From the NCBI GenBank assembly GCA_025786725.1, contig JAHLTZ010000006.1:62001-126000 (forward strand): 64,000 nucleotides of DNA. The letters run 5' to 3'. Positions 2,002 through 59,200 of this stretch are shown here, in pieces (position 1 is the first letter of the stretch; every line of letters starts with the position of its first letter). The notes beneath the pieces are model-generated. The model was not told where the DNA came from. It did no database searches and saw nothing but the letters and a program-made list of their open reading frames with translations. Position numbers and translations under genes: made by a program. This DNA comes from Syncephalis fuscata S228 (lineage: Eukaryota > Fungi > Zoopagomycota).

Positions 2002-3578
2002 TTAATGCTGTTCAGTCATACCACGTTCTGCCTGATGAGTGGCAGCAACATCTTTCTCTTGGTTCATTTCGGCAAATGGATCGCTGTTGCGTCCAACCAT
2101 GTCAACTGGACGACGTTCTGGATGATTAATGTATGAATGACGATATCCATAAGCGAAGTATATAACAATACCAACAGCCATCCAAATAAACAATCGTTCA
2201 ATTGTTGGAATGGTAGCTGTACAAATTAATCCAAGTGATAATGCTGCGCCAATGCCTGGAATAATAAACGGCCCACCTGGTACTTTGAAACGGCGTTGGA
2301 GATCCGGCGCAGTATATCGCAAAATGATTACACCGATATTGACTAGGAGAAAGGCAAACAATGTACCAATTGATGTCATTTCACCGAGAACATCAATAGG
2401 CAATACACCGCCGGCAACAGCACAAATAACACCAGTAATAATCGTAATAACATATGGTGTGTGGAATTTAGGATGGATTTTAGCAACAAACTTGGGGAAT
2501 AATCCGTCGTTGGCCATGGCGTAGAAAATACGAGGTTGTCCCATCAACATAATTAACATTACAGACGTTAAACCAGCAATGGCACCAATGTCGATAATAA
2601 TGACAAGCCATTTCCAGCCCAGTGCCTTTTCGATAGCATAGGTAAGTGGGTGAGCGGTGTTGAGTTCGTTATAAGGCAAAAGACCAACAAGAATGGCAGC
2701 GACAGCAATGTAAAGTACGGTGCAGACAACAAGAGAACCAAGAATACCAATTGGCATGTCTCGTTGAGGATTTTTGGCTTCTTGGGCGGCAGTTGATACA
2801 GCATCAAAACCGATATAGGCAAAGAATACCACGGTAGCAGCAGTGAAAATTCCCTTACCGCCATATTTGCCATCATCGGTACGTGGTGGAATAAATGGTG
2901 TATAGTAATCGCTATTAACCTTGCTGCAACAGGCAAAGATAAATAGCAAAATAACGATAAGCTTGATGACAACCATAGCAGCGTTGAATCGAGCTGAAGC
3001 CTTGATACCAACGACCAAAATTGCAGTAACTACCAATACAATTAAAACCGCAGGCAAGTTTATGTAATTGCCCGTAGCTATAAATGCTTGAGTATCTTGA
3101 TCAAAACGAACTGGTGCACTGATTAAATATTTGGGGAATGTTTGGCCAGACACGGTCTCTAAGAAGGATACGGTATAACCAGCCCAACCTACGGATACAG
3201 TAGCGGCACCAACAAGATATTCAAGAATTAATCCCAGCCAATGATCCATGCAAGGAATTCGCCCATAGTTGCGTAAGTGTACGTGTAGGCAGATCCGGCA
3301 ACTGGAATCATCGACGAGAGCTCAGAGTATGACAATGCTGCAAATGCGGCAGCAAGACCGGAAATGACAAATGAAATAATTACACCGGGACCGGCATAGT
3401 TTGCAGCAGCAGAACCGGTCAATACGAAAATACCAGTACCAATAATGGCACCGATACCTAAACCAGTAAGCTGGATAGCTCCAAGTGACCGAACAAGGTC
3501 GCCATTATGTGCTTGAGCTGCAAGATCAGCTAAAGACTTTCGAACAACTAATTTTTGAATAATATCACGAAAAGTCAT
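2002..3578 (-). CDS. APC-superfamily (CAT-type) amino-acid permease, paralog 2, intronless; split by a 1-bp deletion at ~3230 that is probably an assembly error
   Basis: ORFs 3228..3578 and 2002..3249 together are colinear with the intact 531-aa paralog. ATTAATCCC here versus ATTAAATCCC in paralog 3. Motifs GAIIGTGIF, GSAYTY, FFAYIGFD. Confidence 0.9.
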
Positions 3579-5026: not shown

Positions 5027-6622
5027 TCAATACTTTGTTTCGGCAGTTGACGCTAATTCAGCCTCATGCATCTCTCGCGCCTTGTTATCATCAGGTATTT
5101 CTGCAAATGGATCGCTATTGCGTCCAACCATATCAGCTGGACGACGTTCTGGGTGATTAATGTACGAATTGTGATATCCATAAGCAAAGTATATAATAAG
5201 TCCAATAGCCATCCAAATAAACAATCGTTCAATTGTTGGAACTGTGGCCGTAGCAATCAGTCCAAGTGATAATGCTGCGCCAATGCCTGGAATGATAAAC
5301 GGCCCACCTGGTACTTTGAAACGGCGTTGAGTGTCTGGTGCAGTATAGCGTAAAATGATTACACCAACATTGACTAGGAAAAAGGCGAGCAGCGTGCCAA
5401 TTGATGTCATTTCACCGAGAACATCAATAGGCAATACACCGCCGGCAATAGCGCAAATAACACCAGTAATAATCGTAGTAACATATGGTGTACGATATTT
5501 AGGATGGATTTTAGCAACAAACTTGGGGAAAAGACCATCACTAGCCATGGCGTAGAAAATACGAGGTTGTCCCATTAACAAAATTAACATTACAGACGTT
5601 AAACCAGCAATGGCACCAATGTCGATAATAATGACAAGCCATTTCCAGCCCAGTGCCTTTTCGATAGCATAGGTAAGTGGGTGAGCAACATTAAGTTCGC
5701 TGTAAGGCAAAAGACCAACAAGAATGGCAGCGACAGCAATGTAAAGTACGGTGCAGACAACAAGGGACGCAAGAATACCAATTGGCATGTCTCGTTGAGG
5801 ATTTTTGGCTTCTTGGGCGGCAGTTGATACAGCATCAAAACCGATATAGGCAAAGAATACTACAGTGGATGCAGTGAAAATTCCCTTACCGCCATATTTG
5901 CCATCATCGGTACGTGGTGGAATAAATGGTGTATAGTAATCGGTATTAACCTTGCTGCAACAGGCAAAGATAAATAGCAAAATAACGGTAAGTTTTATAG
6001 CAACTATGGCAGCGTTGAATCTAGCTGAGGCTTTAATGCCAAACACTAAAATTCCAGTAATAACCAATACGATTAGCACAGCGGGCAAATTTATGTAATC
6101 GCCTGTAGCCTCGAATGCTTGAGCCTTCTGGTCAAAACGGACTGGTGCATTGATAAAGTGTGTTGAAAAAGTAGTCCCAGACACAGTTTCCAGAAACGAC
6201 ACCATATAAGCGGCCCAACCAACGGATACAGTAGCAGCACCAACAAGATATTCAAGAATTAAATCCCAGCCAATGATCCATGCAAGGAATTCACCCATAG
6301 TTGCGTAAGTGTACGTGTAGGCAGATCCGGCAACTGGAATCATCGACGAGAGCTCAGAGTATGACAATGCTGCAAATGCGGCAGCAAGACCGGAAATGAC
6401 AAATGAAATAATTACACCGGGACCGGCATAGTTTGCAGCAGCAGAACCGGTCAATACGAAAATACCAGTACCAATAATGGCACCGATACCTAAACCAGTA
6501 AGCTGGATAGCTCCAAGTGACCGAACAAGGTCGCCATTGCGCGCTTGAGCTGCAAGATCGGCCAGAGACTTTTTGGTAACAAGCCTTTTGCCAAAAACGC
6601 GGAGTTTGTCCGAAAATGCCAT
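5027..6622 (-). CDS. APC-superfamily (CAT-type) amino-acid permease, paralog 3, intact, 531 aa, intronless
   Basis: Single ORF with many hydrophobic segments; TM1 GAIIGTGIF, TM6 FFAYIGFD, AQEAKNPQRDMP, PRIFYAMASDGLFP. Confidence 0.95.
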   Translation of the reverse strand: MAFSDKLRVFGKRLVTKKSLADLAAQARNGDLVRSLGAIQLTGLGIGAIIGTGIFVLTGSAAANYAGPGVIISFVISGLAAAFAALSYSELSSMIPVAGSAYTYTYATMGEFLAWIIGWDLILEYLVGAATVSVGWAAYMVSFLETVSGTTFSTHFINAPVRFDQKAQAFEATGDYINLPAVLIVLVITGILVFGIKASARFNAAIVAIKLTVILLFIFACCSKVNTDYYTPFIPPRTDDGKYGGKGIFTASTVVFFAYIGFDAVSTAAQEAKNPQRDMPIGILASLVVCTVLYIAVAAILVGLLPYSELNVAHPLTYAIEKALGWKWLVIIIDIGAIAGLTSVMLILLMGQPRIFYAMASDGLFPKFVAKIHPKYRTPYVTTIITGVICAIAGGVLPIDVLGEMTSIGTLLAFFLVNVGVIILRYTAPDTQRRFKVPGGPFIIPGIGAALSLGLIATATVPTIERLFIWMAIGLIIYFAYGYHNSYINHPERRPADMVGRNSDPFAEIPDDNKAREMHEAELASTAETKY

Positions 6623-12029: not shown

Positions 12030-12620
12030 TAACATGAATTGTCACTGTGAATTGGTATTTCTGCACATTAGCTTGTTATTATGTTTATTTTATCATCATA
12101 AAACGCTTCAAATTTATTTTAAACTAGATTTTATTTTTAATATTAGAATTTTTAAATCTATGTAATATGATTACTTTCTCGTTAACTATTTACACGAAAC
12201 TGTAAACTGTATTTTTGGTCAACTTTTATGGCAAAAACTATTGTTTTATTTCTTATACCAATCGGTATAACTAAGCATGGAGAACTTGAATCCAATCATT
12301 ATTTTGCCGTATTTTAATTATATATGTCATGAATGACTAAAAACTGCTATTTTTGTGCATTCATTAGTGTATTACTACAATTACTACATTATCACACAAC
12401 ACAATAACGGTATACTTTACCAATAGCTACCTATATGTTATGTGCATACTTGTGCAAAATATCAGGCAATTTTCTTGATTATACGCAAAGTTATACGTAA
12501 TATTATCAATTTTTTACTAAGTAAATAATTATTACTGCTTTTTAATTTACATTCCATTGGCTTTTATCATTTAGTTACACTATAATTATTCTTTTAAGCT
12601 GCATATAGCTATTATGAATT
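12030..12620. repeat. Diverged partial copy of the foldback element (matches ~58320-58900)
   Basis: Shared strings such as ATACCAATCGGTATAACTAAGCATG, CATGAATGACTAAAAACTGCTATTTTTGT and TTAGTGTATTACTACAATTACTACAT in colinear order. Boundaries approximate. Confidence 0.85.
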
Positions 12621-23781: not shown

Positions 23782-26755
23782 AAAAGATATTACAATAATA
23801 TTTATTGGAACAATAATTAACTGGCACTGATTATGCTGTTTAATAAAAGCTAGCATTATAATATGCATATTAATTGAAAATGCAATGTACATAAATATTA
23901 GAAATGTGTTTTGTTTATTGTAAAATGGGTATGAAGTAAATTTATAGTTGCTCTAATATAAAGGCAACGTATAAAGGTGTTACCAATAAGCTTGTCGATA
24001 TTACTGTTCGTGGCATGATATAGCCGTCAGTGTTTATGACACGGCAATAGTCAGCTAAGTGTCTAATGGTATATGGATATTACTGCGGTGTATATCAAAG
24101 GAACAAAAGGTACTGTTTTAGATCTAGTGTTATGGTCTAGGATTTATAGACAGATACAACTTGCAGACAAACCAGACAGTCAACGTAAAGCTTTCTACTA
24201 TTGCTGTATGTGCTGTTGCTGTATTACTTATATCTGCCACTACAACAATAAATGCCAACCTAAGTCGTCTTCGTCGAGGATTACCGTTGAGTTAAAGACA
24301 AGATTCATATACACTTAGCAAAAACAACAATGCTGTAGAATCAAGCTTGGGTCATCTACGTTAAAATTAACTAGATAGAGGAGCATGGCCAGTGTGTTTT
24401 TAAAAGCTGTAGGCTCCGAGATAGAGCTAGTGCCGCTGAATAAAGTATATTTCCATATAATCCGATGACTGATACTTACAATCACCATACTTTAGTTCAT
24501 TCATATTTTTAATTCGGTTGGTGTAAATTATATACATGATGCATATTATATATTAAAGTGATATTTGTCTTTTTGTTGTTACTATGGTTTTAAGTAATGC
24601 ATACCAAACCAAAATCAAAATAGTGATTTATTAACTCGTTTACTCTATTGTCTATCACATAATATCTATTGTCTTTCGGTAAACATATGTTGCTATCCAG
24701 TCTTCTGTCTATTATTTGAATGTTAAATTGACAAAAAACTATTTCAATATATATGATAATATTGCGATGCAGCTCAAGCGACCAACAAGCATTACGGACT
24801 GATAGGTATCTTCTACTATCTTTACCTTATAATCAAACAATTGGCAACATCAATGCCTGGTCCAGTGTTTTATTATCAGACATGTCGATGCACAACAGCC
24901 AATAATTAGCTCAAATAATTGATCCAAAACCAAGGTTTTATCGACAGGTGGTTTTACTGTGCTAAAATAACTCGTTCATTCCTGTAACCAGACTGCAATG
25001 TCAAATTAAATGAATTTGTGAGCTGACCAGTATATTCGCATAATTTAAATGTTGCAGCTAGTTTATGCACAATAGTAGGTACTTGTAAATAACCACAAGC
25101 TAAGAAATGTTGTAGGGCAATTAACAATTCACTAAGTGATCATCATGCGTGGCAATAACTTAATATAATAGGCCGTAAGTGATGCTGTATATTAACTGAC
25201 TATACACTAATTGCATAGTTACTGTTTGTATCAACAGCTTAATATAATAGGCTGTAATTGGTATTGTATATCAAGCAGCTACACGCCAATTTTGTTATAT
25301 ATGTAATGCGCATAAACAAATTAATATCAATAGATAGTAAGTGATATCTTATAGCAATTGGATATATACCGACTATATTTATGCGTTGTGTTTATTAAAT
25401 AACTTATAGAATTAGATCGTAAGTGGCATTATATATCAATTGGCTATGTACTAACTGCATATTATGCAATGTGTGTATCAATACGCTGCTATTAGTAGAG
25501 AGTAAGTAATATGGCATATTGGCTGATTATGCATTAATTCCATGTTATTTACTGTCTATATCAATGATTTAATGCAAACAGTCCATAAGTGACATTGTGT
25601 CAATTAGTTATGCATTAATTGCATATTCATTGCGTATCAATAACTTAATATTAATAGGCAGTAAGTATTAGTGCATATTAATTAACTATGTATTGTTTAT
25701 ACACTACATGTTTTTATATCAATAATTCAATGCTAATAGGACGTAAGCGATATTGTATGCTAATTAACTGGTTACTAATTACACGTTTATTTTGTATGCT
25801 GATGCTAATACTAATAGGCGGTAGGTGATAATTTATATTAATTATTTATGCGCTAATTGTATATTATATACTTTATGCATCAATGATTTAATAGTAATAG
25901 TAAGTAATATGGGATATTGATGTATTATGAATTAATTTTATGTGATGTTTTGTGTTCAACAACTTGACATTAATAGAGAGTAAGTGATGTTATACATTGT
26001 TGGTTTATACATTAATTCATATCACTTGTGTATATATTTATAAACATAGAATAACCGGTACATCCAATACATTGGCATTAGCAGTAGGATTGAACGACTA
26101 GTTCAATCTATTCTAGGTATATACTAGGTGCAAGGCAAGGTCGTTTGACAAGTGCCGTTCAGCTTATTTATATAGCAAGTTCCAGCCAATGATCCGGTTT
26201 ATTTCTTTTAATCAGTGACACCATTACATCACTAGCAAACCTGAATTCAGTTGTGTTTATTCAACTATTCAGATTTTTAGTAATAAATACATGGCTCCAT
26301 TTTACTTTGTTTGATCAAGTCATCATGTCTATGCTCATGTTTTATTTACATCCAACAATTAGCAAATGATAATCAGCTATATTATTAACATGTTTGCAAA
26401 AATACAAAAGCTTAAATTTACATATTTCAACACTTTGTGCTAATCAACTGTTTTCTCAATAGCTTTAATTTTATTATTTGCTTTTTATGTAACAAGATTC
26501 GATACTGTCAATTAGCTGGCTAATTCATTTAACCATTCTAGTCGCTTGACCAATGATCGCTAGCATCTTCAGTGTAGATACTGCGCTTGTTTATCGCACT
26601 GCGAGTATCAAGTGCTTTCAGATTATCAGCCTCTACTTGTTGTGTAGCTGCCTTTATTTGGGCCATTACAGTTGCATTACGAATGGCCGAAGAGCATGTG
26701 GTAGTGGCAGGACGTGGTTGAGCCTGAGCGTTGGAAGTAGCATAAGAAACGTAGA
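23782..26755. repeat. ~2.97 kb direct segmental duplication, copy A (derived; carries a 3' fragment of VPS72)
   Basis: Near-identical to 42145..45109 (offset 18363 at the left end) with scattered substitutions and 1-bp indels; breaks off inside the VPS72 last exon. Confidence 0.97.
25100..26049 (+). other. Tandem array of homologous 70-80 nt intron-like units separated by 3-nt putative micro-exons (copy A)
   Basis: YAG|NNN|GTAAGT-type junctions at 25172, 25251, 25334, 25416, 25499, 25582 (donor ATAAGT), 25658, 25740, 25818 and 25977; final acceptor at 26049. Confidence 0.7.
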
Positions 26756-42144: not shown

Positions 42145-45109
42145 AAAAGATATTACAATAATATTTATTGAAACAATAATTAACTGGCACTGATTATGCT
42201 GTTTAATAAAAGCTAGCATTATAATATGCATATTAATTGAAAATGCAATGTACATAAATATTAGAAATGTGTTTTGTTTATTGTAAAATGGGCATAAAGT
42301 AAATTTATAGTTGCTCTAATATAAAGGCAACGTATAAAGGTGTTACCAATAAGCTTGTCGATATTACTGTTCGTGGCATGATATAGCCGTCAGTGTTTAT
42401 GACACGGCAATAGTCAGCTAAGTGTCTAATGGTATATGGATATTACTGCGGTGTATATCAAAGGAACAAAAGGTACTGTTTTAGATCTAGTGTTATGGTC
42501 TAGGATTTATAGACAGATACAACTTGCAGACAAACCAGACAGTCAACGTAAAGCTTTCTACTATTGCTGTATGTGCTGTTGCTGTATTACTTATATCTGC
42601 CACTACAACAATAAATGCCAACCTAAGTCGTCTTCGTCGAGGATTACCGTTGAGTTAAAGAAAAGATTCATATACACTTAGCAAAAACAACAATGCTGTA
42701 GAATCAAGCTTGGGTCATCTACGTTAAAATTAACTAGATAGAGGAGCATGGCCAGTGTGTTTTTAAAAGCTGTAGGCTCCGAGATAGAGCTAGTGCCGCT
42801 GAATAAAGTATATTTCCATATAATTCGATGACTGATACTTACAATCACCATACTTTAGTTCATTCATATTTTTAATTCGGTTGGTGTAAATTATATACAT
42901 GATGCATATTATATATTAAAGTGATATTTGTCTTTTTGTTGTTACTGTGGTTTTAAGTAATGCATACCAAACCAAAATCAAAATAGTGATTTATTAACTC
43001 GTTTACTCTATTGTCTATCACATAATATCTATTGTCTTTCGGTAAACATATGTTGCTATCCAGTCTTCTGTCTATTATTTGAATGTTAAATTGACAAAAA
43101 ACTATTTCAATATATATGATAATATTGCGATGCAGCTCAAGCGACCAACAAGCATTACGGACTGATAGGTATCTTCTACTATCTTTACCTTATAATCAAA
43201 CAATTGGCAACATCAATGCCTGGTCCAGTGTTTTATTATCAGACATGTCGATGCACAACAGCCAATAATTAGCTCAAATAATTGATCCAAAACCAAGGCC
43301 TTATCGACAGGTGGTTTTACTGTGCTAAAATAACTCGTTCATTCCTGTAACCAGACTGCAATGTCAAATTAAATGAATTTGTGAGCTGACCAGTATATTC
43401 GCATAATTTAAATGTTGCAGCTAGTTTATGCACAATAGTAGTACTTGTAAATAACCACAAGCTAAGAAATGTTGTAGGGCAATTAACAATTCACTAAGTG
43501 ATCATCATGCGTGGCAATAACTTAATATAATAGGCCGTAAGTGATGCTGTATATTAACTGACTATACACTAATTGCATAGTTACTGTTTGTATCAACAGC
43601 TTAATATAATAGGCTGTAATTGGTATTGTATATCAAGCAGCTACACGCCAATTTTGTTATATATGTAATGCGCATAAACAAATTAATATCAATAGATAGT
43701 AAGTGATATCTTATAGCAATTGGATATATACCGACTATATTTATGCGTTGTGTTTATTAAATAACTTATAGAATTAGATCGTAAGTGGCATTATATATCA
43801 ATTGGCTATGTACTAACTGCATATTATGCAATGTGTGTATCAATACGCTGCTATTAGTAGAGAGTAAGTAATATGGCATATTGGCTGATTATGCATTAAT
43901 TCCATGTTATTTACTGTCTATATCAATATTTAATCAAACAGTTGTAAGTGCATTGTGTAATTGCTATTCATTAATTGCATATTCATTGCGTATCAATAAC
44001 TTAATATTAATAGGCAGTAAGTATTAGTGCATATTAATTAACTATGTATTGTTTATACACTACATGTTTTTATATCAATAATTCAATGCTAATAGGACGT
44101 AAGCGATATTGTATGCTAATTAACTGGTTACTAATTACACGTTTATTTTGTATGCTGATGCTAATACTAATAGGCGGTAGGTGATAATTTATATTAATTA
44201 TTTATGCGCTAATTGTATATTATATATTTATGCATCAATGATTTAATATTAATAGTAAGTAATATGGGATATTGATGTATTATGAATTAATTTTATGTAA
44301 TGTTCTATGTTCAACAACTTGACATTAATAGAGAGTAAGTGATGTTATACATTGTTGGTTTATACATTAATTCATATCACTTGTGTATATATTTATAAAC
44401 ATAGAATAACCGGTACATCCAATACATTGGCATTAGCAGTAGGATTGAACGACTAGTTCAATCTATTCTAGGCATATACTAGGTGCAAGGCAAGGTCGTT
44501 TGACAAGTGCCGTTCAGCTTATTTATATAGCAAGTTCTAGCCAATGATCCGGTTTATTTCTTTTAATCAGTGCACCATTACATCACTAGCAAACCTGAAT
44601 TCAGTTGTGTTTATTCAACTATTCAGATTTTTAGTAATAAATACATGGTTCCATTTTACTTTGTTTGATCAAGTCATCATGTCTATGCTCATGTTTTATT
44701 TACATCCAACAATTAGCAAATGATAATCAGCTATATTATTAACATGTTTGCAAAATACAAAGCTTAAATTTACATATTTCAACACTTTGTGCTAATCAAC
44801 TGTTTTCTCAATAGCTTTAATTTTATTATTTGCTTTTTATGTAACAAGATTCGATACTGTCAAATTAGCTGGCTAATTCATTTTAACCATTCTAGTCGCT
44901 TGACCAATGATCGCTAGCATCTTCAGTGTAGATACTGCGCTTGTTTATCGCACTGCGAGTATCAAGTGCTTTCAGATTATCAGCCTCTACTTGTTGTGTA
45001 GCTGCCTTTATTTGGGCCATTACAGTTGCATTACGAATGGCCGAAGAGCATGTGGTAGTGGCAGGACGTGGTTGAGCCTGAGCGTTGGAAGTAGCATAAG
45101 AAACGTAGA
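42145..45109. repeat. ~2.97 kb direct segmental duplication, copy B (probable donor; continuous with intact VPS72)
   Basis: Matches 23782..26755; its right end runs on into the complete VPS72 last exon. Confidence 0.97.
43460..44404 (+). other. Intron-like unit / 3-nt putative micro-exon array (copy B)
   Basis: Same junction series starting TAG|GCC|GTAAGT at 43534; the sixth junction here keeps GTAAGT (43944); last acceptor at 44404. Confidence 0.7.
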
Positions 45110-56908: not shown

Positions 56909-59200
56909 TTGTTAATAAACACATGTCAACAACTAATAACTGTTGTTAGTTGTTTATCGATAATAGTTAGTGTTGATATTATATATATGTACTATCCTTG
57001 TGATTTAGTAGATTTTTCTAATTGCCTAATGTATTTTTAGGCACACTGTTATAACAATACTGACATAATATCGGAATGCTAACAATACTATGGTCGTGAA
57101 AAAATAACATTTTTATTTCTAATAGTTATAATTGTAGTAAACATATCTTGAAAAGCCGATAAAACGCTAGTTTACAGATTTAAACCTTCAATTATCATTT
57201 CAATTCTATGCCAGTATGCAACCGTATTAAAAGAGCTATTGTAGTGTAATTAGATGATAAAAGGCAATGGAATGCGAATTAAAGGCAATATTAATCATTT
57301 AATTAATAAAATGTTGTCAGTATGATGTATACCTTTACGTAAAATCAAGCAAATTGCCTAATATTTTGCACAGTTATGCATTTGATATATAAATAACTAT
57401 TGGCAAAGTATACCGTTATTGCATTGTGTGATGATGTAGTAATTGTAGTAATACACTAATAAATGTACAAAAATAGCAGTTTTTAGTCATTCATGGCATA
57501 TATACTTGAAATACAGTAAAACGATTATTGGATTCGGGTTCTGCATGCTTAGTTATACCGATTGGTATGATTTATAGAACAACGATTTTTGCAAAAAAAG
57601 TTGGTCAAAAATGCAATTTACGTGTCTTTGATTTACTTAGTAAAGCGTTGATATTACTACGTATACCTTTACGTAAAATCAAGCAAATTGTCTAATATTT
57701 TGCACAGTTATGCATTTGATATATAAATAACTATTGGCAAAGTATACCGTTATTGCATTGTGTGATGATGTAGTAATTGTAGTAATACACTAATAAATGT
57801 ACAAAAATAGCAGTTTTTAGTCATTCATGGCATATATACTTGAAATACAGTAAAACGATTATTGGATTCGGGTTCTGCATGCTTAGTTATACCGATTGGT
57901 ATGATTTATAGAACAACGATTTTTGCAAAAAAAGTTGGTCAAAAATGCAATTTACGTGTCTTTGATTTACTTAGTAAAGCGTTGATATTACTACGTATAC
58001 CTTTACGTAAAATCAAGCAAATTGTCTAATATTTTGCACAGTTATGCATTTGATATATAAATAACTATTGGCAAAGTATACCGTTATTGCATTGTGTGAT
58101 GATGTAGTAATTGTAGTAATACACTAATAAATGTACAAAAATAGCAGTTTTTAGTCATTCATGGCATATATACTTGAAATACAGTAAAACGATTATTGGA
58201 TTCGGGTTCTGCATGCTTAGTTATACCGATTGGTATAAGAAATGGAACAATGATTTTTGCACAAAATGTTAGTCAAAAGTGGAATTTATCTGTAAATATT
58301 TTAATGAAAATCTGCTATATATATACCAATAGCATAAATTACCACTGTGTATTAATGTTTTTGTATACTAAATTGCTATTATGTTTTGTTTTTGTGCTGT
58401 AGAGTACTTTAAATTTACTTTATACCAAATTTTATTTTTTATATTAAAATTATAAAGTTTAACCGTTTTCATTAATAGTATTTACAGGTAAATTCCACTT
58501 TTAGCTAATTATTTTTGCAAAAATCGTTGTTCTATAAATCATACCAATCGGTATAACTAAGCATGCAGAACCCGAATCCAATAATCGTTTTACTGTATTT
58601 CAAGTATATATGCCATGAATGACTAAAAACTGCTATTTTTGTACATTTATTAGTGTATTACTACAATTACTACATCATCACACAATGCAATAACGGTATA
58701 CTTTGCCAATAGTTATTTATATATCAAATGCATAACTGTGCAAAATATTAGGCAATTTGCTTGATTTTACGTAAAGGTATACATCATACTGACAACATTT
58801 TATTAATTAAATGATTAATATTGCCTTTAATTCGCATTCCATTGCCTTTTATCATCTAATTACACTACAATAGCTCTTTTAATACGGTTGCATACTGGCA
58901 TAGAATTGAAATGATAATTGAAGGTTTAAATCTGTAAACTAGCGCTTTATCGGCTTTTCAAGATATGTTTACTACAATTATAACTATTAGAAATAAAAAT
59001 GTTATTTTTTCACGACCATAGTATTGCTAGCATTCCGATATTATGTCAGTATTGTTATAACAGTGTGCCTAAAAATACATTAGGCAATTAGAAAAATCTA
59101 CTAAATCACAAAGATAGTACATATATATAATATCAACACTAACTATTATCGATAAACAACTAACAACAGTTATTAGTTGTTGACATGTGTTTATTAACAA
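56909..59200. mobile_element. Non-coding foldback / long-inverted-repeat element
   Basis: 56909-57597 is the near-perfect reverse complement of 58512-59200 (~689 bp arms); no ORF; a related diverged copy lies at ~12030-12620; no TSD seen. Confidence 0.75.
57327..58236 (+). repeat. 334-bp tandem repeat, ~2.7 near-identical copies, inside the foldback element
   Basis: GTATACCTTTACGTAAAATCAAGC starts at 57327, 57661 and 57995. Confidence 0.95.

Follow-up and report, generated by a model that had tools for sequence, protein, structure and literature searches.

The question raised by this locus in Syncephalis fuscata S228, a member of a mycoparasitic genus (PMC10386755), is whether an array of units of about 80 bp is a satellite or a chain of introns separated by exons the size of one codon, and what such a gene could encode. 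The window, which is the whole 64,000-nt stretch of DNA that was analysed, contains the array on its forward strand, and the splice junctions that an initial annotation had listed between 25172 and 25977 were all found at those positions when the sequence was checked, with intron lengths of 70–80 nt and a last acceptor at 26049 (Table 1). A junction near 25900 had been described as collapsed; its position holds, while the RNA shows a 5-nt exon there. A second, almost identical copy of the surrounding segment had been missed. The two copies differ by five one-base deletions and three substitutions within 47 nt around the sixth micro-exon (25566–25612 in copy 1, 43925–43970 in copy 2), and the clustering of the one-base deletions in copy 2 suggests local consensus errors. 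The best overall explanation, and one that we consider highly probable, is that the array represents the 3' half of one gene from a large family encoding small, secreted, Cys-rich peptides.

Table 1. Coordinates of features in the window and of codon-sized exon chains in metagenome contigs (positions refer to the window unless a locus is named).
Feature	Position	Strand	Remarks
Segmental duplication, copy 1	23782–26755	+	2,976 aligned nt, 98.9% identity to copy 2
Decayed relative of pre-pro leader	24185–24283	+	Without ATG and without donor; tblastn E ~0.01; separate upstream paralog relic
Deletion junction	25092–25149	+	Upstream homology to L004/L005 stops at ~25092; array homology resumes at 25149
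Micro-exon array, copy 1	25149–26049	+	11 intron plus micro-exon units; corresponds to the 3' half of an L003/L004/L005-subfamily gene; homology to intact L003/L004 starts at 25149
Micro-exon GCC	25172–25174	+	In window-type RNA, donor spliced to an AG lying upstream of the next micro-exon, so that the following exon has 16 nt (25238–25253); 16-nt insertion, contig depth 116.5, as read from the alignment
Micro-exon at 25251	25251	+	Listed junction; next donor GTAATT
Intron with weak donor GTAATT	25254–25333	+	Retained in window-type RNA contig
Micro-exons ATA, ATC, AGA	25334–25501 (starts 25334, 25416, 25499)	+	For ATC and AGA the RNA takes the AG upstream, making exons of 9 nt (25410–25418) and 6 nt (25496–25501)
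Sixth micro-exon	25582–25590	+	TCC with non-canonical donor ATAAGT in assembly; ATT in RNA
Micro-exons GCA, GAC, GCG, 5-nt exon (25895–25899), AGA	25658–25979 (starts 25658, 25740, 25818, 25895, 25977)	+	Consecutive joining in RNA
Terminal exon	26050–26330	+	2 coding bases, TAA stop 26052–26054 in phase 1, then 3' UTR; 98% identity to L003/L004
Segmental duplication, copy 2	42145–45109	+	Second array 43511–44404, terminal exon from 44405
NACHT/NLR-like gene, then 21–33 phase-0 codon-sized exons	L049: 5235–7523; L041: 5567–8174; L109: 5342–6880		Metagenome contigs, other fungi
Signal peptide ending in KR or AR, then phase-0 chain of 3-nt exons	L113, L146, L076; also L143, L128, L043, L108, L065		Leader seen in L113, L146 and L076

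That codon-sized exons of spliceosomal introns are really spliced here, as had been proposed from the sequence, is borne out by joints in one RNA run (X1), used as Logan contigs, which drop rare isoforms and variants, and aligned to L003, the closest intact relative of the window array. The RNA status of X1 was guessed automatically, and the run behaves as RNA, with a summed contig depth of 10^4–10^5 in the bins of exon 1, where paralogs and both micro-exon and intronless genes are pooled, and 0 in the promoter bins. A terminal-exon contig stops matching at the acceptor, and joints with GT..AG ends include ATC-TTG-AGA-ATT across three introns (L004 allele) and TTG-TTT across one, while a 3-nt insertion fits GTC-GTC. 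For intact genes the joints come from partial intermediates of low depth (2–8), short of a complete mRNA, and the relic adds a contig of its own. The contig of the window type matches the joined exons of the window in 33 of 36 letters, contains the GAC and the 5-nt exon that are found only in the window copy, and takes the first AG wherever two exist, producing exons of 16, 9 and 6 nt; an RNA contig also ends at the acceptor homologous to that of the window's terminal exon. The remaining three letters are ATT in the RNA, against TCC followed by the ATAAGT donor in copy 1 and TT in copy 2, and neither assembled copy therefore explains this molecule fully; besides consensus error, a transcript from an unassembled allele is a possible reason for the mismatch.

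The units belong to a family spread over the genome. A search of the genome returned 134 matches on about 30 contigs, and a genome-wide regular expression for the junction, a check suggested in the initial annotation, found at least 3,092 adjacent pairs of an intron and a 3-nt exon vs 0 for the reversed control pattern; near-identical locus pairs are probably haplotype duplicates that inflate the family counts. An intact gene opens with a phase-1 exon for the signal and pro-peptide, continues with one 3-nt exon for each residue and closes with a terminal exon; each codon is built from two exons, and every codon of the family spans a splice junction. Exon 1 starts with ATG, encodes a hydrophobic leader, is 94 or 97 nt long and ends in phase 1 in 16 of the 16 fetched loci where it was seen, and the leader, which ends in a dibasic RR in most members, is a predicted signal peptide, judged by eye from the hydrophobic stretch and the dibasic site. 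About 19–40 micro-exons follow in the intact paralogs (3 nt at 475 of 503 junctions, with nearly all of the others 6 nt through an acceptor shift), lying between mutually homologous tandem introns of ~80 nt (70–85 nt), and the terminal exon contributes mostly two bases and the stop. Conservation by column, the other check that had been suggested, was computed for 488 unique paralog units and also bore out the splice signals, with GT or GC at 488 of 488 donors and AG at 487 of 488 acceptors against 84% for the median interior column; this is supportive rather than independent, since most of the 488 units were first found by splice-site patterns and the conservation is thus partly built in.

The order of the exons carries the coding signal. 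When the exons of 17 arrays were joined in order and read in phase 1, the 440 codons included one stop, which belongs to the short L010/L011 gene, and 81 Cys, whereas 2,000 shuffles of exon order gave 27.5 ± 3.9 stops and 38 ± 4.4 Cys, and 0 reached the observed values. The array therefore cannot be accounted for by a satellite, the signal being tied to the order of its exons. An ordinary ~80-bp satellite with a splice-like consensus by chance would fit units that are 65–75% alike and homogenised within arrays, but not the order-dependent avoidance of stops and enrichment of Cys, the conserved signal and terminal exons or the existence of intronless equivalents; the satellite reading is refuted by the spliced RNA joints, is left with next to no probability, and the initial description of the units as intron-shaped stands. 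Its phase-0 peptide does not, the frame of the family being phase 1; read in phase 0, the joined arrays have five stop triplets and two Cys. Further, three annotated S. fuscata proteins (P0003, P0009 and P0014) match the genome at 100% without introns and have the same leader and Cys spacing, which confirms the phase-1 frame independently.

The window locus itself and its twin at 43.5 kb are best read as a transcribed pseudogene that lost exon 1 by a deletion of ~1.4 kb. The suspicion that the locus is left over from a family with active members elsewhere was well founded, as exon 1 is deleted and intact paralogs are present in the genome. Upstream of the array there is a 70–77% match to the upstream region of L004/L005 that ends at ~25092, and, relative to L004, the ~1.4 kb absent from the window copy comprises the proximal 5' region, the signal-peptide exon 1 and the first ~10–11 micro-exons. 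Both of the remaining Cys codons of copy 1, as assembled, read Arg. The decayed leader relative upstream (Table 1) was considered as exon 1 of the window array and rejected, as its position at the L005 locus falls ~1.9 kb upstream of the true exon 1. It is very improbable that the window copy works as a gene with a phase-0 frame that starts in some upstream exon: transcription and splicing are seen and phase 0 is open across 10 codons in copy 1, but the family frame is phase 1, phase 0 has five stop triplets among 457 in intact paralogs, exon 1 is deleted, the RNA shows exons of 16 and 5 nt as well as a retained intron, and additional AGs upstream of the acceptor are present at 3 of 10 junctions in the window copy vs 4 of 442 in the paralog set. 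The deletion of exon 1 came first and the segmental duplication second, and the window-type transcript is still produced and spliced, though via cryptic acceptors and with one retained intron.

The products of the family have about 50–70 aa and four to six Cys, often arranged as C-x2-C-x3-C...C-x3-C, with spacings such as 3-14-3 and 2-3-13-3-3, though some members depart from this, including the window subfamily (3-9-1). A Pfam search of the Cys peptides, made with the intronless relatives, found no domain, and an Atlas feature search likewise returned nothing. The mature part of P0014 (residues 31–69) was modelled as a two-helix hairpin, a helix-loop-helix with a CxxxC on each helix (pLDDT 89.5), and its nearest solved folds include peptides of the plant alpha-hairpinin type, with TM scores of 0.75–0.79 and Z up to 5.8, a weak match (E 6–8). 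Alpha-hairpinins and vicilin-buried peptides (VBP-8, Jug r 2 leader peptide, Luffin P1, Nigellin-1.1 and BWI-2c), which are helix-loop-helix peptides of ~40 residues with CxxxC on both helices, were the top or near-top fold matches; a hairpin of two helices is, however, a shape that many proteins have, and, unlike alpha-hairpinins, many of the Syncephalis members have six Cys. A sequence search for homology to plant vicilin-derived peptides gave no match, and the likeness is most likely convergent. A CS-alpha-beta defensin fold was rejected, the single model made having no strands, as was an ankyrin or LRR context for the array. The product would be a Kex2-processed, disulfide-stapled helix-loop-helix peptide that works outside the cell, with host fungi or competing microbes as likely targets, and from its form and the ecology of the fungus it may be regarded as a putative extracellular effector or antimicrobial peptide. 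Six other S. fuscata proteins (P0004, P0005, P0011, P0015, P0016 and P0017) carry the same pre-pro leader on unrelated mature domains, one of them with a Pfam SVWC match, and this leader-sharing superfamily is reminiscent of conotoxin precursors.

Intronless paralogs are an integral part of the family. A profile search with exon 1 found 17 proteins, and all that were looked up are hypothetical proteins of Syncephalis fuscata; the annotated family members that were checked are either intronless or do not follow the arrays. From 319 candidate leader hits, 150 were scored, with about 80 stopping after exon 1 and 21 of full length without a stop (count by hand). Judged by coordinates, homology to the terminal exon at C350 and C35 starts 148 and 193 nt past the ATG, which equals 94 + 3n, and the stop lies two bases on. 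At C35, C243, C143 and C361 the intronless ORF follows immediately on the complete 716-nt stretch of upstream homology (78%). As several intronless genes keep this whole upstream region, they are not ordinary retrocopies at new sites, and a classical retrocopy was rejected on the same ground, upstream promoter sequence being kept in several of them. The intronless copies were compared through matches of proteins and of coordinates. They would have arisen by loss of introns in place through cDNA, which is the favoured reading, or would represent the ancestral state. Family members often occur in inverted pairs (C347, C146, C350, C1 and C112 of G000), and at C347 two divergent ORFs less than 1 kb apart have an upstream region common to both.

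Comparison with described systems places the family near, and outside, two of them. The micro-exon genes (MEGs) of schistosomes have a signal peptide, small symmetric exons, a product secreted by a parasite, family expansion and fast amino-acid change, and their exons are mostly 15 bp (6–81), with introns of 0.1–5 kb and documented alternative splicing; they are reported as restricted to flatworms (PMC4350168, PMC10526429). Like them, the Syncephalis family has a leader, tiny symmetric exons that make up most of the coding region, an expanded membership, fast amino-acid change and a history of being overlooked by automatic annotation, but unlike them, nearly all of its exons are 3 nt, in phase 1, with homologous ~80-nt tandem introns. 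No sequence homology to schistosome MEGs was found, the protein matches lying only in S. fuscata among those named. The nank genes of Tuber (2012), as they are cited in PMC4986451, have codon-sized micro-exons in part of a large intracellular NLR and diversify via alternative splicing. In so far as that account describes them, the Syncephalis family resembles them in being fungal, in having several codon-sized spliced exons and in being an expanded family linked to interaction between organisms, and differs in that its micro-exons supply the entire mature portion of a putatively secreted peptide, in a fungus of the Zoopagomycota; NACHT and ankyrin domains are absent from its short products. 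In Coprinopsis, 3-nt exons occur at about one per gene, 27 in 26 genes (10.1101/2024.05.10.593147). The array family works like a micro-exon gene and belongs to neither the MEG nor the Tuber nank family. A literature search, with subscription papers outside its coverage, returned no report of the Syncephalis family or of genes with one intron per codon, and the family is apparently an undescribed, extreme variant of micro-exon genes.

Related architectures appear in other fungi. A pattern scan of metagenomes recovered 23 chains made up of differing triplets, which in phase 0 contain 0 stops over 391 codons vs 29 and 16 in the other phases, these counts being at the sequence level, made after stop-rich triplet sets had been filtered out and including two loci that are duplicates. 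Some of the chains follow NACHT genes and are Tuber nank-like, while at least three come after a signal peptide that has KR or AR at its end (Table 1); there was no Syncephalis-like family among them. The phase-0 chains for secreted peptides are apparently an independent class of micro-exon genes in other fungi, and the matches imply that many fungal genomes may hide such genes as apparent minisatellites. Several metagenome matches were false, consisting of CRISPR arrays (L036, L116) and short TAAG-type satellites.

The initial annotation had proposed that skipping of exons in combination makes peptide variants, and this has found no support so far. Joins that make a stop amount to 0.2% in order, 7.1–8.2% when one to three exons are skipped and 6.5% for random pairs, and Cys account for 7% of skip joins vs 19% of joins in order; selection acts on the product of ordered joining, whereas nothing points to selection for tolerance of skips, a pattern that low-level skipping would still fit. 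That combinatorial alternative splicing is the main purpose of the arrays, giving many peptides per gene as reported for Tuber nank and schistosome MEGs (PMC4986451, PMC4350168), is unlikely. All of the exons are symmetric (3 or 6 nt), skips keep the frame and 92–93% of skip joins are free of stops, but skipping creates stops at the random rate and breaks the Cys pattern, a weak test in that a 7% loss could be tolerated, and every interpretable joint in the X1 contigs lies between consecutive exons, with no exon-skip joint among them, in contigs that hide rare forms.

The other part of that proposal, an origin of the units by tandem duplication, is upheld by comparison of units within and between arrays, and the units still multiply in this way. 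In several arrays the introns of the inter-Cys loop are 90–100% identical to another unit of the same array, while the introns of the N-terminal framework are at 70–85%, and close paralogs differ by whole units. Exons diverge about 2–3.5 times faster than introns in most close pairs (0.275 vs 0.081 for L017/L009), and the pooled pN is 0.106 vs 0.043 for introns, figures from non-independent pairs whose introns may have been homogenised; pS is 5/65, too noisy for a dN/dS estimate or a claim of positive selection. Each intron and codon together would form a recombination substrate of ~80 bp, in which unequal crossover or gene conversion would add, delete or swap single residues, mostly in the inter-Cys loop. 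Diversification would thus proceed residue by residue via unequal crossover and gene conversion, and peptide diversity would arise mainly at the DNA level, through duplication of units and rapid change of exons.

A neutral origin, in which the unit of intron and codon spread like a minisatellite and was tolerated via efficient splicing without any benefit for diversification, would suit the intronless paralogs, whose shared leader, promoter and Cys pattern mean that introns are dispensable for such a peptide. This explanation is rather unlikely, as array-type loci outnumber intronless ones (about 80 vs 21 among the scored leader hits) even though they are ~25-fold more costly in length, units duplicated recently lie mostly in the inter-Cys loop, and unrelated fungi have similar arrays in NLR tails and in secreted peptides. 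We put forward tentatively, with a confidence just short of even, that the intron and codon units are heritable single-residue cassettes in a recombination array, that spliced variants may be fixed as intronless genes, and that other fungi independently evolved the same architecture, in phase 0, in their NLR genes and their genes for secreted peptides, a widespread class hidden from gene finders and read mappers.

As an extreme of gene structure, 20–40 consecutive 3-nt exons spliced in order make exon definition, order and fidelity testable at minimal exon size, with the window copy, which slips to cryptic acceptors, as a natural decayed control. A single family clearly exemplifies how tandem duplication adds introns and shows probable intron loss across whole genes, and roughly a hundred loci, counting haplotype duplicates, encode candidate effector or antimicrobial peptides in a mycoparasite.

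Several other elements were observed in the arrays and in the window. Seven loci (L009, L011, L014, L017, L020, L022 and L030) have one intron of 472–501 nt per array, with a related element of ~410 nt near its 5' end, which occurs in different genes and units and has a (TTTTA)n end and an apparent target duplication of ~16 nt. The element had no terminal inverted repeat and no match in an Rfam search, and its sequence suggests that it may be SINE-like, antisense and with a site preference. In the window, two tandem amino-acid permease genes (2002–3578 and 5027–6622) are 90.5% identical, the first being split in two ORFs, and a 334-bp tandem repeat with an inverted copy occupies 56909–59200, with a related copy (83%) at 12202–12597.
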